49,571 bases of DNA from Octopus bimaculoides (GCF_001194135.2 NC_068993.1:44017216-44066786); one strand, 5' to 3'. Positions 22,531-38,236 are shown, counted from the first letter of the stretch. Numbers and translations are program-made. Notes: generated from the sequence alone by a model not told the origin.

Positions 22531-22598
22531 ATCTTCCGACTCGAGTAAACGTTTCTTTGGACTTTAATTCGTTCGACTCAATTGATGAAATGAATATG
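22531..22598 (+). CDS. Cys-loop anion channel exon (68 bp): LPTRVNVSLDFNSFDSIDEMNM
   Basis: Acceptor ttttttatcttttggcag, donor ATG|gtaatt. Aligns without gaps to GlyR alpha1 [21 protein letters not shown] (beta1/loop G). Confidence 0.93.
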
Positions 22599-23424
22599 GT
22601 AATTATGAAGACGACTAATTGTATCCAACTTTGTTATTGCAATAAATATTTAATTGTTATTTTCATTATTATTATAGTCAGGTTTAATATCTTCAAGCAC
22701 GTTAATATTCTCTTTATGAAACAGCTTTTCGCAATACTGTGATATTAAAGTGGTATAATTGAAAATCACAAGGTAAAAAGTATTAACCGTTTCGAAGCAG
22801 CGAAATAGTTTCAGTCAGTTTTTTTTTTTTATATAATTCCATTTATATCGATGGTATTCTCATAGAAATATTGTGTGGAGTCAAAAGTTTTGCAATATTT
22901 TGGTAACTTATTTGCTCTATTCAAGTTACAACAAAAGCAACCTTGCATTCAAAGTAAAGACCATCGTGTTACACCGTCTGAAGCTTCCTTTCTGCCGGTT
23001 CGAAGCTAAGATCACTTTCATTGAAGCTTCTACTTCTCTTGGTTGATGAAGTGTCGCAAGCGTAGGAAGTGAGCCATGGATCTGAATAAGTAATCCTAAC
23101 ATGCATAAGCAGTAGTTAAGCAATTGCTAGCTTCCGAAATATGTTGCCTCGTAGTATTATGAACACAGAACGTAACTCAATACGGCAAGCGTTTTGTCCG
23201 ACGCCCAGCTAATCTAGCAACTTGTAGAGTGGAAAAATATTATATATATATTTATCAAATGATGATGACAGTTGTTAGTTGATATTGTGGAACTTATAAT
23301 AACTACAAAGTGGCATTTCTGCCATAAATTTGAATGACATTGAACGAAATTTACAATAAATAAAAAATTGTGCATATGTGCCGCATGGTCTTCATTGAAT
23401 CAGATCGATCTATGCCCGGTGACA

Positions 23425-23490
23425 ATACACACACACTCACTCACAAACACACACTCACTCACAAACACACACTCACTCACAAACACACAC
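23425..23490. repeat. 18-bp tandem repeat, about 3 copies (acacacactcactcacaa)
   Basis: Read directly. Confidence 0.8.
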
Positions 23491-23619
23491 TTATGTATGT
23501 ATATATATATGTATGTGTGTGTGTGTGTGTGTGTTTGTGTGTGTGCATGTGACTATATGCGTATATATAAATGTGTTTGCATTTCGGTGTACGTGTAGGT
23601 ATATTGTCCCCGCGCGTGC

Positions 23620-23715
23620 ACATACACATACACACACACACACACACACACACACACACACACACACACACACACACACACACACACACACACACACACA
23701 CACACACACACATAT
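23620..23715. repeat. (CA)n microsatellite
   Basis: Read directly. Confidence 0.95.
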
Positions 23716-34353: not shown

Positions 34354-35357
34354 TACAATAGGATCTTTTCTGTTTGGTTGCCAGCGGCTGTCAGCGTCAA
34401 TTTTCTGTTCCAATTGATTTCATATTCAGTGTAATAATACACTTTTATAGGCTAATTAATGACGTGCAAGTAATTTTCGCTATAACTCAATAAATAAGAA
34501 GTTATTAGCAATTAAAGATTGAAAATTTTGGTCATTTTAGCCAATCGAGAGCCACAGGCATATTCATGTCTGTTTCGATAGTAACAAGCAGAAACATGAG
34601 AACTTTTTTGCTTGTTGCCATAGTAACAGTCTTTGGAAAGTCTTTTATCTGTGAGGAAGTACATGTTAACAGCGGTCTTTGAAAAGTTATTTTATCTGCG
34701 AGGAAGCACGTGTTGACAAATGTTTGTTTACTCGTTTCTTTTTGTCATTGGGCATTGAGGTGGTTGTGAGATGTGCTGAAAATAGCAGCTACATAAGATT
34801 TTTTGGATAAATCTTTTAAGCTAAGGTTTATTTACCAACGTCTCACTCAGAGATTTAAAACTGTTTTTCTCTTTTAAATTAGTATAAACATTTATTTACA
34901 TCAAAGTTAAATTACCGGAGAACTTTCATCTAATTCTTCTAAGCCTTTCTGTTAAAAATTGTAGTCTGCTTATCGCATGTAACGTGTTGTTTATCGCATT
35001 TGGCGGTTGTGAGGTGTGCTAAAAATAACAGCTAAATAAGATTTATTTACACGAAAGAAAATTACCGAAGACATAACACGTGCTGTTTACAAATATTGAC
35101 AACACGTGCTATTTTCAGGATGTTGACGACAAAATATGCAGTCACGCACAAAATGACAGCTTCCAAATCCTGTTTCCTGACTGGGTGAAGATGGTCAAAC
35201 TTTAAACCTCTATAACTTTTTAAAAGCATTTTTTAGGAAAAAAAAACTCCAGCAGTTCAGTTTGTGCAAATGTTTTATTGCACCAAATTTAAAAATTTTC
35301 GACAAACTTTAATTTTTGGACCCGTTAGCAACTAAACAGAAAAAATCCTTACAAATA
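34354..35357. mobile_element. About 1-kb non-autonomous TIR DNA element
   Basis: aggatcttttctgtttggttgccagcgg (34360-87) matches the reverse complement of 35322-49 at 24/28. Internal direct repeats; no transposase ORF seen. Confidence 0.65.
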
Positions 35358-36699
35358 TACCACATGAAGTGAAGATTATCTCGCATAGATGTTTTCTGAT
35401 TCTGCAAATCTGTACGGTCTGACAACACAAAAGAACAACTGCAATAACACCAGAAATTTTAAACTCAATCTTTCACATAAATTAACGACGGTAACTTTTT
35501 TTTTCTTTCTGGTTGTGCCCTTCGGCAAAGCAATCACTCCCTTGATCATACAACAGCTTTTTATCATTGTTGCTTCTGGGTTAACAATTGTGATACACAC
35601 CAATAACGACAGGAGCGAACAAATCTGTGAGTTTGAATAAATATCACAGAACAGACGATAGTTGACGATAGCAGTCTCAGCGATCTGATCCTCGCATCAT
35701 CCAAATCATGATAACTTCGTATTTTACAACGGCAAAAATAATATATGTTTCAGTTAAGGAATAATCAGTTAAGCAGAACCCAGTACTAGATTGATATTTT
35801 TTTTGTCATCCCTAGAAAGATGAAAGGGAAAACGGCGAGGAAAGATTTTGGACACAGAACGTAAACTATATACAGCAAAGCATTTAATCGTGATGGTGGT
35901 GGTGAGGATGATGATGACGGTGGCGGTGGTGGTGGTGATAATGGTATTGTCGACTATTAGTAGTATTAGCATTGTTGCTATTACAACCATTTTTGCTAAT
36001 GGTCCTTTCTTTCTTTCTATAAGTATTAGCTTAATGCTTATACGCTCAGGAATATACATATCCAAATATTTGTCTGCATGTACGCATATATGTGAGTGTC
36101 TATGTATGTATGTCTGTGTGCATATGCGTGTATTTGCGTACGCGTACGTGTGTGTGCGTGTGCGTGTTCGTGTGTGTGTACGCGCGCGCGTGTATACACA
36201 CAATCTAGTTTCACGCACTATATGAATAAAGAATATATTAAGAATTTTCTGCCATTATGGCACCACTCTTTTAATCTGTTTTATCTATGCTCGAATGATA
36301 TTATCAATGAATACACTCGAGACCAAACTCAGTGTAAAGCATTTAATGTTCAATGTATGAACACCATTAAGAACAATAACGATTTGAAAATTAGAGAGCT
36401 TTTACTGACTTGTTACTACGTATCATTATATTCTATATTCTATATCCAAGTCACTTGTTGATAGTCATGCAGTATATTTGTCACGAATGTATATATATTT
36501 GTGTATGTGCGTTTCTTTATATGTGTATAAGTATTTATAGGTGTATGCATAACCTGTTATATACTCGATTCATTGGTGACTATGTTGGTACCTGAACAGA
36601 GTATCCCGGTGAGGAAATTTACTAGAAACCAAGCATGACCGAACAAAAAACAAAAAATAAAACTACTCATTAAAAGACAACCAACATAGAATCAACCGC

Positions 36700-37060
36700 T
36701 GTTTAGCAATAATGTGCGCGGACATAATGACATTCGAGATGATGATCAAACGTACAATAAGATCACTGACAGGTGTGAAAAATGGATACACTTAGAATCC
36801 ATTAACCATAGTGATGGCAGCTTGTCTGCAAGGGTGTTATGTCGAGTAAAACTCTGACAGGTTCAGCCAATGTAATATTTGATCTGCAACAATTTGTAAT
36901 AACTTAGTATCTGCTTTGTATTTTTGAATTTTATCTATGATCAAGTGTGGTGCTATGCAAACCATATCTTTCATTACGGATACCTCAAGCTTATCCCTGT
37001 AGAGGTGTTCCTTGTTAACCTAGATGTCATTTTGAGGCTCATTAATACGTAATACTTATA
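36700..37060 (-). mobile_element. Possible highly degenerate CR1/L2-type RT fragment
   Basis: Minus strand KDMV...KIQKYKADTKL, loosely YADDTK, and a later SKCIHF; weak. Confidence 0.3.
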
Positions 37061-37850
37061 CTTATAGTCTGGCCTCGAAAACATACCCTAACATGCTTGA
37101 AACGACGGCGCTATTTTAGGCGCACCTCAGCGCATCAAGCAGCTGCACCACGGCTGTTTGTATTTCTGGCCGTACTGCTTGGGCCGTGACACGAATGTTA
37201 GGCTACACGTCCGCTGGCACTCGTTTCCACCTCATGTTCTAATGTTCATTTCGTGGTGTTCAGCTGATTGGCATGTTTCCTTTGAGTCGTTCCTTACTGA
37301 GTGTCCGAGTCGACCAGTACGAATTTTGAGTGAACTTCCATCATATATATNNNNNNNNNNNNNNNNNNNNNNNNNNNNNNNNNNNNNNNNNNNNNNNNNN
37401 NNNNNNNNNNNNNNNNNNNNNNNNNNNNNNNNNNNNNNNNNNNNNNNNNNNNNNNNNNNNNNNNNNNNNNNNNNNNNNNNNNNNNNNNNNNNNNNNNNNN
37501 NNNNNNNNNNNNNNNNNNNNNNNNNNNNNNNNNNNNNNNNNNNNNNNNNNNNNNNNNNNNNNNNNNNNNNNNNNNNNNNNNNNNNNNNNNNNNNNNNNNN
37601 NNNNNNNNNNNNNNNNNNNNNNNNNNNNNNNNNNNNNNNNNNNNNNNNNNNNNNNNNNNNNNNNNNNNNNNNNNNNNNNNNNNNNNNNNNNNNNNNNNNN
37701 NNNNNNNNNNNNNNNNNNNNNNNNNNNNNNNNNNNNNNNNNNNNNNNNNNNNNNNNNNNNNNAATATATTTATATATATATATATATATATCTTTGTGTG
37801 TGTGTGTTAAATGAAACCGTTTTTAAAACCCTGTAATTTTATTATTTCAG

Positions 37851-38236
37851 AAAGATTCTCCTGTTTAAGAGCTGAATTTCATTTGAAGAGAAATATGGGT
37901 TTCTACATTCTCAACATATACTGTCCATGTTCATTGACCGTCTTGGTATCATGGTTTTCATTTTGGCTAAACATAGACGCTGTCCCTGCCCGCACATCAT
38001 TGGGTGTTCTCACAGTGTTAACGATGACCAGTCAAACGGCTGCAGCCGTCTCCGCTCTTCCCAAAGTTTCTTACATCAAAGCTATAGATATCTGGATGGC
38101 TATCTGTCTCATATTCGTCTTTCTCGCACTTCTAGAATATGCTGTGGTCAACGTTTTGAATCGCAGAGAGATCAAACGGTATTTAAGAAACCGTCCTTTG
38201 CAGATGGACCCAGAGAAAGTTTCGCTAGCTGTTTTT
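37851..38236 (+). CDS. Cys-loop anion channel exon (386 bp), end of loop C plus M1-M2-M3 and start of the intracellular loop
   Basis: Acceptor ttttattatttcag, donor TTT|gtaagt. RFSCLRAEFHLKR, then M1 (YILNIYCPCSLTVLVSWFSFW), M2 (AVPARTSLGVLTVLTMTSQ), LPKVSYIKAIDIW and M3 (LLEYAVVN). The PAR motif indicates anion selectivity. Confidence 0.97.

Follow-up and report, generated by a model that had tools for sequence, protein, structure and literature searches.

Among the described Cys-loop receptors, the alpha subunits of the vertebrate glycine receptor (GlyR; GLRA1-3, structures 7mlu, 9y7p, and 5vdi) are the best match, in both sequence and fold, to the octopus protein that we describe here. Their orthosteric site is built from F159, Y202, T204, and F207 on the principal face and R65 and S129 on the complementary face (PMC6465966), whereas the so-called AAA motif comprises three aromatic residues and a threonine on loops A-C, an arginine on loop D, and a serine on loop E; many lophotrochozoan subunits lack it and have been referred to as “new subunit classes” (PMC4338433). 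The nearest relative with functional data is Aplysia GluClAc1 (NP_001191519; P0300), 45% identical to the octopus protein, which has no loop D arginine and is barely gated by glutamate (PMC4178172). GluClAc1 and LOTGIDRAFT_125242 (P0081), its orthologue in Lottia, respond poorly or not at all to glutamate, and they resemble the octopus protein in having Ser/Thr rather than arginine at position 65, together with H119, Q157, and no aromatic residue at 202. By contrast, GluClAc1 keeps S129 and carries K127 and the lophotrochozoan loop A R101, the latter also found in the Aplysia GluClAc2-like protein, whereas the octopus protein carries R129, I127, S101, and acidic residues at 44 and 65, and the two belong to different clades. 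A binding-site arginine has also shifted during the evolution of the Aplysia- and Schistosoma-like GluCls, and experiments showed agonist recognition to be possible with an arginine on one or the other face (Lynagh et al. 2015; PMC4338433). In those channels, it is the extra arginine for the second carboxylate that moved, from loop G to loop A, with loop D's arginine and the serine of loop E kept, whereas in the octopus protein the core loop D arginine itself has shifted to the position of the loop E serine. The pHCl and SsCl channels are likewise anionic pLGICs without a classical small-molecule agonist, in which extracellular histidine and glutamate residues matter for gating (PMC13065796), but they are of arthropod lineage, share no common sensor motif, and have, in SsCl, a sensor located outside the classical pocket. 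Finally, a recent preprint describes cephalopod-specific anionic LGIC groups called “unknown”, one of them sister to the mollusc GluCls (Kirchhoff et al., 2025-26, bioRxiv 10.1101/2025.06.15.659772); they are cephalopod anionic Cys-loop channels, as is the octopus protein.

The gene lies on the plus strand (19037-42283) of the window, that is, the whole 49,571-nucleotide stretch of Octopus bimaculoides DNA analysed here, where seven ag/gt-bounded exons (exons 2-8) yield a spliced product of 380 amino acids. These exons and the assembly gaps between them are the following:

19037..19107, plus strand: exon 2, N-terminal helix (SLLIQVML...PPNFDK), delimited by ag/gt and reading frame, 100% identical to XP_014782555.1 residues 36-58
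22531..22598, plus strand: exon 3 (68 bp, also 68 bp in A. hians), beta1 and loop G, with D44 (GAC, 22560-62)
24491..24947, no strand: assembly gap inside intron 3 (22599-28036)
26669-27221 and 27747-27756, no strand: assembly gaps inside intron 3 (22599-28036)
28037..28263, plus strand: exon 4 (227 bp), loops D, A, and E, placed by HMMER alignment and codons
29065..29227, no strand: assembly gap inside intron 4 (28264-31261)
31262..31344, plus strand: exon 5 (83 bp), Cys-loop (C-x13-C) and start of loop B, with Q157
32735..32881, plus strand: exon 6 (147 bp), remainder of loop B, loop F, and the loop C tip, SICDCNSIMNNE
37351..37762, no strand: assembly gap inside intron 6 (32882-37850), with its end 88 bp upstream of the acceptor of exon 7
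37851..38236, plus strand: exon 7 (386 bp), last part of loop C (F207 and second Cys), M1, M2 with PAR, M3, and start of the M3-M4 loop
42125..42283, plus strand: exon 8 (159 bp), remaining part of the M3-M4 loop, then M4, with TGA directly after 42283

All seven exons have an ag acceptor and all but the last a gt donor; the codon of F159 is split by the intron before exon 6, which also encodes A160 and Y161. Exon sizes, including that of the 83-bp Cys-loop exon, are presumably the same as in vertebrate GLRA genes. The sequence-only reading had counted 381 amino acids in the assembled protein; the 380 encoded by the window align with no gap and no mismatch (380/380) to residues 36-415 of the O. 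bimaculoides protein XP_014782555.1 (P0130), automatically named “glycine receptor subunit alpha-3” in RefSeq. The complete gene has eight exons and is intact; its exon 1 encodes 35 amino acids, with the initial Met and signal peptide, and a tblastn search of the readable window did not find this peptide. The absence of exon 1 from the readable sequence and the draft nature of the window, with 17 N gaps of which five fall within the 22531-37870 segment (spanning exons 3-7) first singled out, might suggest an assembly artefact, with exons joined across gaps, or a pseudogene with a drifting pocket. However, these gaps are all intronic and, because the gap-free Argonauta hians locus (L007) has identical lengths for the seven exons (71/68/227/83/147/386/159 bp) and the same splice sites, no exon is concealed in a gap. 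Furthermore, the octopus coding exons contain no stops or frameshifts, dN/dS between octopus and Argonauta is 0.027, and spliced orthologous mRNA occurs across many runs, the cuttlefish protein being encoded on 49 Logan contigs (six of them retrieved, L001-L006). An artefact or a decaying gene is thus virtually inconceivable, refuted by the RefSeq identity, the A. hians exon structure, and the dN/dS value. The gap at 37351-37762 is bordered by (TA)n/(TG)n simple repeats.

The encoded protein contains the Pfam domains PF02931 (Neur_chan_LBD, E 4.6e-42) and PF02932 (Neur_chan_memb, E 1.5e-34), and its best PDB match with HMMER is the GlyR alpha1 structure 7mlu (E 1.6e-93, about 40% identity). 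Its AF2 model (pLDDT 88.8) shows beta strands followed by four helices (214-237, 243-267, 276-312, and 345-379, according to DSSP), and Foldseek gives TM values of 0.84-0.87 to GlyR. A Cys-loop of the C-x13-C type characteristic of the pLGIC superfamily is encoded in exon 5 (CPMQLQKYPMDQQIC), and the Pro-Ala-Arg signature of the anion branch, already noticed in the sequence-only reading, occupies M2 positions -2' to 0' (codons 37985-37993, VPARTSLGVLTVLT). With its ligand-binding domain, Cys-loop, loop C disulfide, four transmembrane helices, and PAR, the octopus protein can be recognised from sequence as a Cys-loop anion-channel subunit. It shares with vertebrate GlyR alpha the Cys-loop, the loop C disulfide, the PAR pore, F159, Y161, and F207, but the 19' Arg is replaced by Val and, as shown below, it lies outside the GlyR clade and departs from the agonist motif. 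We also considered the 6' Leu as a beta-subunit-like sign and dropped it: this residue is uninformative because lophotrochozoan sequences whose pocket is the canonical R65/S129 often have it (138 Leu versus 153 Thr).

We numbered the pocket positions after GlyR alpha1 using the HMMER alignment to the solved structure 7mlu. This numbering places Ser 65 and Lys 127 in Aplysia GluClAc1, and Arg 65 and Tyr 127 in P0319, an Aplysia protein without a GluCl name in the database that is taken here as GluClAc2, in agreement with the residues given for both channels by Blarre 2014. The six replacements initially proposed relative to GlyR alpha, F44D, F63V, R65E, R119H, S129R, and E157Q, were all confirmed, with the HMMER equivalences to 7mlu matching exactly (D44, GAC 22560-62; V63, GTA 28055-57; E65, GAA 28061-63; H119, CAC 28226-28; R129, AGA 28256-58; Q157, CAA 31338-40). 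The alignment to GlyR alpha1, described as gap-free, is so across the binding loops, but two one-residue indels occur elsewhere, after PNF and in RLNFYN. Loop C departs from GlyR too, with Met instead of Y202 and Glu or Asn, depending on the alignment, instead of T204. As a consequence of R65E, S129R, Y202M, and T204E/N, only F159 and F207 are left of the six GlyR orthosteric residues, and with E157Q the glycine-receptor motif, extended to the loop B E157, is absent, as had been claimed for the canonical amino-acid agonist motif. The AAA motif is equally incomplete, with Y99 (codon 28166-68), Y161, and F207 kept but the Thr of loop C, the Arg of loop D, and the Ser of loop E replaced, and S101 takes the place of the loop A Arg 101 that completes the lophotrochozoan GluCl motif. 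The aromatic box (Y99, F159, Y161, and F207) is nevertheless retained. Loop E also carries M117 and I127. The AF2 hairpin registers obtained with DSSP predict the strand pairs 44-65 and 117-129, so that the pocket floor would read D44-E65-R129(-M117), with H119 and I127 one row along, compared with F44-R65-S129(-L117) in GlyR. The charge of the complementary face changes from roughly +2 in GlyR (R65, R119) to about -1 (D44, E65, and R129, with H119 titratable). Acidity at positions 44 and 65 is specific to the cephalopod orthologues; H119 is common to many mollusc subunits with a canonical R65/S129 pocket.

This unusual pocket has been fixed across coleoid cephalopods under strong purifying selection in octopods and cuttlefish, D44, V63, E65, H119, R129, and Q157 being invariant in octopus, Argonauta, and cuttlefish. 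Between octopus and cuttlefish, identity is 93-94% in loops G, D, and E, and the principal-face loops A and B are as conserved as the complementary face. By contrast, the loop C tip is identical at only 4/14 positions (29%) versus 174/198 (88%) in the rest of the extracellular domain (p = 2e-6). In short, there is hardly any variation in loops G, D, A, E, and B, while the tip of loop C evolves freely, which weakens models where loop C caps an agonist on the octopus subunit; in the sister paralogue, loop C is retained at 13/14 positions. The hypervariability of the tip had escaped the sequence-only reading.

In a neighbour-joining (NJ) tree, the octopus protein falls in a mollusc-only clade of cephalopod, gastropod, and bivalve sequences, apart from vertebrate GlyR and FFR.RS.E-type sequences, and thus outside the vertebrate/annelid GlyR type. 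The core of this clade has 88% bootstrap support and the cephalopod orthogroup 100%, but a single origin of R/K129 together with the YIT.HR.K paralogue group only 54%. Its members constitute a mollusc-only “loop E arginine” subfamily, defined here by a non-Arg residue at 65, R/K at 129, and H119, to which the octopus protein belongs by all three residues and by its position in the clade. Every member without R65 carries R/K at 129, while position 65 drifts (T/V/Q/I/S/D/E); R/K129 accompanies a non-Arg residue at 65 in 45 sequences and R65 in only one. In these non-R65 members, S129R places an Arg on the strand beside 65, so that the complementary-face arginine has been relocated rather than lost: it left loop D (beta2, GlyR R65) for the neighbouring strand of loop E (beta6, S129). 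The idea that the channel had lost both of its amino-acid anchors consequently does not hold, nor does E157 qualify as a general amine anchor, as nematode GluCls and the Aplysia GluClAc2-like protein have Ala at this position.

The relocated R129 could replace R65 in binding an amino acid or other carboxylate, with E65 and D44 merely tuning the site. This reading, which we deem unlikely for the octopus channel, draws on the fixation of R/K129 in all non-R65 members, on the presence of at least one R/K among positions 65, 119, 127, and 129 in 272/286 relatives, on the dispensability of E157 in GluCls, on the weak glutamate response that GluClAc1 (S65, K127) still shows, and on experiments in which an arginine moved elsewhere in the pocket kept glutamate gating (PMC4338433). 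With a neutral residue (T/V/Q/I/S) at position 65 in the gastropod and bivalve members, R129 is free there, and the subfamily may remain amino-acid gated by way of the relocated Arg. In cephalopods, however, R129 is flanked by E65, with D44 one strand beyond; the amino-acid motif has lost both its loop C residues, Thr and Tyr, and the tip of this loop is not conserved; loop A, with S101, offers no Arg to a second carboxylate; and the GluClAc1 response is very poor, while those of GluClAc2 are abolished by R98S.

The same acidic residues led the sequence-only reading to suggest a cationic ligand, either a biogenic amine or a choline-like compound. The protein would then be a homomeric chloride channel opened by a non-amino-acid cation, histamine and diamines included, that D44 and E65 attract. 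The inverted charge of the complementary face and the conserved aromatic box fit this proposal, and invertebrate anion pLGICs gated by amines, acetylcholine, and histamine exist (PMC13335744; PMC8536830). Nonetheless, we give it little credit: known agonists place their nitrogen in the principal-face aromatic box with an acidic partner on loop A or B, such as D188 in a dopamine-gated channel, whereas here Q157 leaves loop B without an acid. Moreover, D44 and E65 belong to the complementary face and occupy the ligand-tail site beside R129, which would neutralise one of them, and the loop C tip is unconstrained, so the acidic residues do not point directly to a cationic ligand. From the initial proposal of an orphan non-amino-acid channel, the real gene and the missing motif thus stand, but not the arguments based on anchor loss and ligand charge. 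Gating by protons or metal ions, with D44, E65, and H119 as titratable sensor, is very improbable. D44 and E65 are predicted cross-strand neighbours, and adjacent carboxylate pairs often have shifted pKa values. In addition, pH-gated anionic pLGICs to which extracellular His and Glu contribute do exist (insect pHCl and mite SsCl), but the SsCl sensor, outside the classical pocket, is not conserved among pH-sensitive channels (PMC13065796). R129 beside E65 would lower, not raise, the pKa of the latter, and H119, as mentioned, also occurs in canonical subunits.

A further possibility, conceivable though not probable, is that the octopus protein is an obligate heteromer subunit contributing mainly its complementary face, or a non-agonist, modulatory interface. 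Precedents are the non-alpha nAChR subunits, which provide the complementary face, and GABA-A gamma2, in which the loop D Arg is replaced. The disparity between loops G, D, and E and the loop C tip agrees with such a role, and cephalopods possess several paralogues within the subfamily (P0007, P0351, P0135, and P0069) and A. hians at least one canonical subunit (P0370, with R65, S129, E157, and Y202). The equal conservation of the principal-face loops A and B speaks against it.

The explanation that we favour, by a modest margin over its negation, is that R129 is paired with E65 and that the subunit is not gated canonically by glycine, GABA, or glutamate, passing chloride in response to another agonist or in partnership with other subunits. 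The E65-R129 salt bridge, already suspected, is putative but geometrically reasonable. Ion-paired with E65, R129 would offer no free guanidinium to an agonist carboxylate, and, as loop C would not use its residues for capping amino-acid agonists either, none of these three transmitters would gate the channel in its canonical pose. Chloride would pass when the channel is opened by a different agonist reading the conserved charge cluster of the complementary face; alternatively, it would open in a heteromer in which the octopus subunit supplies the complementary face to another subunit. A salt-bridged arginine can still bind a carboxylate.

In the literature, we found neither an amino-acid-gated orthologue with these substitutions nor a functional record for any R/K129-subfamily member or octopus orthologue, and no HisCl, MOD-1, LGC-53/55, or ACC name appeared among the best 120 named matches in either search. 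Diagnostic peptides of the octopus protein were likewise not found in those supplements of Kirchhoff et al. that were searched. The octopus subunit is an orphan, one of many mollusc channels of like kind. Its gene is real and intact and encodes a glycine-receptor-like, putatively chloride-conducting subunit in which the arginine shifted to the neighbouring strand and two acids were added. Although more speculative, and in our opinion doubtful, the coleoid D44-E65-R129 cluster might even be the mark of a chloride channel with a new agonist class in the GlyR/GluCl-like branch, recognising a dication or diamine, a histamine-like amine, a proton, or another non-amino-acid transmitter. If true, mollusc receptors of the “loop E arginine” subfamily would, more broadly, form a separate and so far undescribed class with its own transmitter.

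As judged from its sequence and those of its relatives, the Octopus bimaculoides protein XP_014782555.1, which carries the RefSeq name "glycine receptor subunit alpha-3", is an orphan subunit of an anion channel, conserved and with a rearrangement of its complementary face. The 380-aa product encoded here contains the Pfam domains Neur_chan_LBD and Neur_chan_memb, among solved proteins it matches GlyR alpha1, alpha2 and alpha3 best (E about 1e-93), and its AF2 monomer (pLDDT 88.8, pTM 0.79) shows a confident GlyR-like fold (TM 0.84-0.87). The pore holds the PAR motif, and its 19' residue is not Arg but Val, common to the rest of the subfamily. 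Changes in the binding pocket, by HMMER alignment to GlyR alpha1 (whose residue numbers we use), comprise F44D, F63V, R65E, R119H, S129R and E157Q. The sequence-only reading had correctly identified all these residues, their codons and the PAR pore; the alignment that it described as gap-free contains, however, two 1-residue indels outside the loops. Loop A has Y99, loop B keeps F159 and Y161 with a G160A change, and loop C keeps F207 and the disulfide, Y202 and T204 being replaced.

These residues lie in an intact gene. The window (36% GC) comes from a draft eukaryotic assembly and includes 17 N gaps. The pLGIC gene was located on the forward strand by a tblastn lead and six-frame reading, and its splice sites were set by eye and by script, as follows.

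Coding exons 2-8 of the subunit gene
19037-19107, + strand, exon 2, ag acceptor and gt donor
22531-22598, + strand, exon 3 (68 bp), ag acceptor and gt donor
28037-28263, + strand, exon 4 (227 bp), ag acceptor and gt donor
31262-31344, + strand, exon 5 (83 bp), ag acceptor and gt donor
32735-32881, + strand, exon 6 (147 bp), ag acceptor and gt donor
37851-38236, + strand, exon 7 (386 bp), ag acceptor and gt donor
42125-42283, + strand, exon 8 (159 bp), ag acceptor, followed by TGA

Splice phases are mutually consistent, and all five N gaps between 22531 and 37870 fall within introns. The product is identical to residues 36-415 of XP_014782555.1 (380/380, no indel), the gap-free Argonauta hians locus (L007) has the same seven exons with equal lengths and the same ag/gt sites, and the cuttlefish orthologue lies on contiguous 4-4.5 kb mRNA contigs (L001-L006), its protein being recorded on 49 Logan contigs. 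Coding sequence is therefore neither missing nor mis-joined at these gaps. Neither alternative nor duplicated exons were found in the window, and Rfam and tRNA scans of it gave no matches. Exon 1 (35 aa, signal peptide; MFALHIMW...SNHVSR in XP_014782555.1) is absent from the readable window, where queries with the N-termini of the Argonauta, cuttlefish and O. bimaculoides proteins did not find it. Since its A. hians counterpart lies ~7 kb upstream of exon 2, the octopus exon probably sits in a gap within 1-19036 (9459-9903, 11428-11634 or 14239-15166) or upstream of the window.

Several peculiarities surround this gene. Octopus sinensis isoform X1 has an extra Gln (LAVF-Q-SNGY; P0128 compared with P0129) exactly at the exon 7/8 junction, equivalent to 38236/42125 in the window, pointing to an alternative 3' splice site shifted by three bases; the O. 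bimaculoides exon 8 acceptor has no AG three bases upstream. In the A. hians gene, part of the 3' end of exon 7 recurs in inverted orientation between exons 4 and 5 (L007 30786-30911, - strand; aa 321-362, 95% protein identity); no such copy was seen in the octopus window. An intronic 271-aa ORF between exons 7 and 8 of the octopus gene (39613-40428, + strand) carries a GIY-YIG nuclease domain (PF01541, E 1.1e-4, slightly over the cut-off), probably the remnant of a mobile element such as a Penelope-like retroelement. Simple repeats adjoin gaps and exons (22400-22440, 37763-37810, 33228-33567 and most N-gap edges); they are (TC)n, (TA)n(TG)n and ATG/GAT-rich triplet runs, the latter producing poly-Met and poly-Asp ORFs, and are probably what broke the draft assembly at the gaps.

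Selection has preserved the unusual pocket. Between octopus and Argonauta, dN/dS is 0.027 (dS about 1.2), and the six pocket residues do not vary among O. bimaculoides, O. sinensis, A. hians, Acanthosepion pharaonis and the rest of the cuttlefish protein cluster; together with the confident AF2 fold, this led us to reject a pseudogene or an artefact. We also discarded Leu at M2 6' as a sign of a beta-like accessory subunit, given that lophotrochozoan relatives with a canonical R65/S129 pocket have Leu in 138 cases and Thr in 153.

The pocket resembles neither that of GlyRs nor that of lophotrochozoan GluCls (S101, loop A without Arg). As a check on numbering, Aplysia GluClAc1 has S65 and K127, and P0319, a protein without a GluCl name in the database, has R65, Y127 and R101; we take the latter to be GluClAc2 because its residues agree with the text of Blarre et al. 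2014 (PMC4178172) and Lynagh et al. 2015 (PMC4338433). GluClAc1, which has no loop D Arg, hardly responds to glutamate, and R98S abolishes GluClAc2 responses (PMC4178172). Loss of E157 had been interpreted as removal of the amine anchor, but nematode GluCls and the GluClAc2-like protein have Ala at this position, so that this loss alone does not remove amine binding.

To place the substitutions, pocket positions were tabulated over 120 homologues and then over 286 aligned domains, including 150 representatives of a 50%-identity library. At least one basic residue occurs among positions 65, 119, 127 and 129 in 272 of these 286 relatives. R/K129 occurs in 45 sequences without R65 versus one with it, while 179 have R65 and no R/K129, a contingency that reflects one or two clade-level events and is not an independent statistical test. 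The phylogeny proposed by the sequence-only reading, run as an NJ tree, places the octopus protein in a mollusc-only group of R/K129 sequences from cephalopods, gastropods (Gigantopelta, Patella, Lottia, Littorina) and bivalves (Mizuhopecten, Pecten, Argopecten, Ruditapes). The cephalopod orthogroup has 100% bootstrap support and the core R/K129 clade 88%, or 54% with a second cephalopod paralogue group added. All clade members have R/K129 and H119, while position 65 varies (T, V, Q, I, S, D, E). Two residues, E65 and D44, are peculiar to the orthologues in cephalopods; an acidic residue at 65 is paired with K129 also in Gigantopelta P0014 and in P0152. Instead of the lost anchor originally proposed, this distribution indicates that S129R is the complementary-face arginine shifted by one strand, a change older than cephalopods. 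Amino-acid gating of the channel through R129 is a possible rival reading.

A second GlyR-like clade, with 100% bootstrap, also has no loop D Arg (P0068, P0074, P0078, P0090-P0092, P0095, P0100-P0120). It consists of mollusc sequences, many from transcriptome assemblies, with R119 in all and, in most, His65 and Thr/Ser129 with a PGR or AGR pore motif, and appears to be another pocket type.

In established structures, R65 and S129 both contact the agonist carboxylate. AF2 strand registers put 44 directly opposite 65 across the beta1-beta2 hairpin, 117 opposite 129 and 119 opposite 127. Combining both, we infer a pocket-floor row D44-E65-R129-M117 where GlyR has F44-R65-S129-L117, in which an E65-R129 ion pair would be natural. 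The cationic ligand previously suggested is possible, but the charge count does not imply it, since the acidic residues would lie on the ligand-tail side, adjoining the relocated Arg. Gating by pH is also possible, as is a role as a heteromer subunit lending its complementary face.

Loop C behaves differently from the rest of the extracellular domain. Its tip is identical between octopus and cuttlefish at 4/14 positions versus 174/198 for the remaining domain (Fisher p = 2e-6), and between octopus and Argonauta at 8/14 versus 93-100% in other regions, while a sister paralogue pair of similar overall divergence (85%) keeps 13/14. This argues that the residues capping amino-acid agonists are unconstrained in this protein, with loops G, D, A, E and B nearly frozen. 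On the sequence evidence, we lean slightly towards a subunit without canonical gating by glycine, GABA or glutamate.

A subunit of apparently canonical amino-acid type does exist in a cephalopod genome: A. hians P0370 ("glycine receptor subunit alpha-2-like isoform X1") has R65, S129, E157, Y161, Y202 and F207. In salivary-gland transcriptomes of cephalopods, a recent preprint found no sign of glycinergic-type LGICs. Cephalopod-specific anionic LGIC groups are still listed as functionally unknown (bioRxiv 10.1101/2025.06.15.659772); the octopus sequence is not present in the supplements of that preprint, and among the papers searched we found nothing specific on the function of XP_014782555.1 or its clade, and none naming the accession.

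As early as 2015, the canonical motif was reported missing from many lophotrochozoan anionic pLGICs (PMC4338433), which limits the value of our observation, and sequence analysis names no agonist. Orphan mollusc pLGICs are known as a category, to which this subunit adds a member with a describable arginine-swap signature. Names assigned automatically, "glycine receptor alpha-3" among them, mislead, and little of inhibitory transmission in cephalopods has been mapped in molecular terms. A mollusc subfamily is now defined, and testable, in which the core carboxylate-binding arginine would stand one strand over, and its cephalopod orthologue, the most charge-altered member, offers a specific target for deorphanisation.
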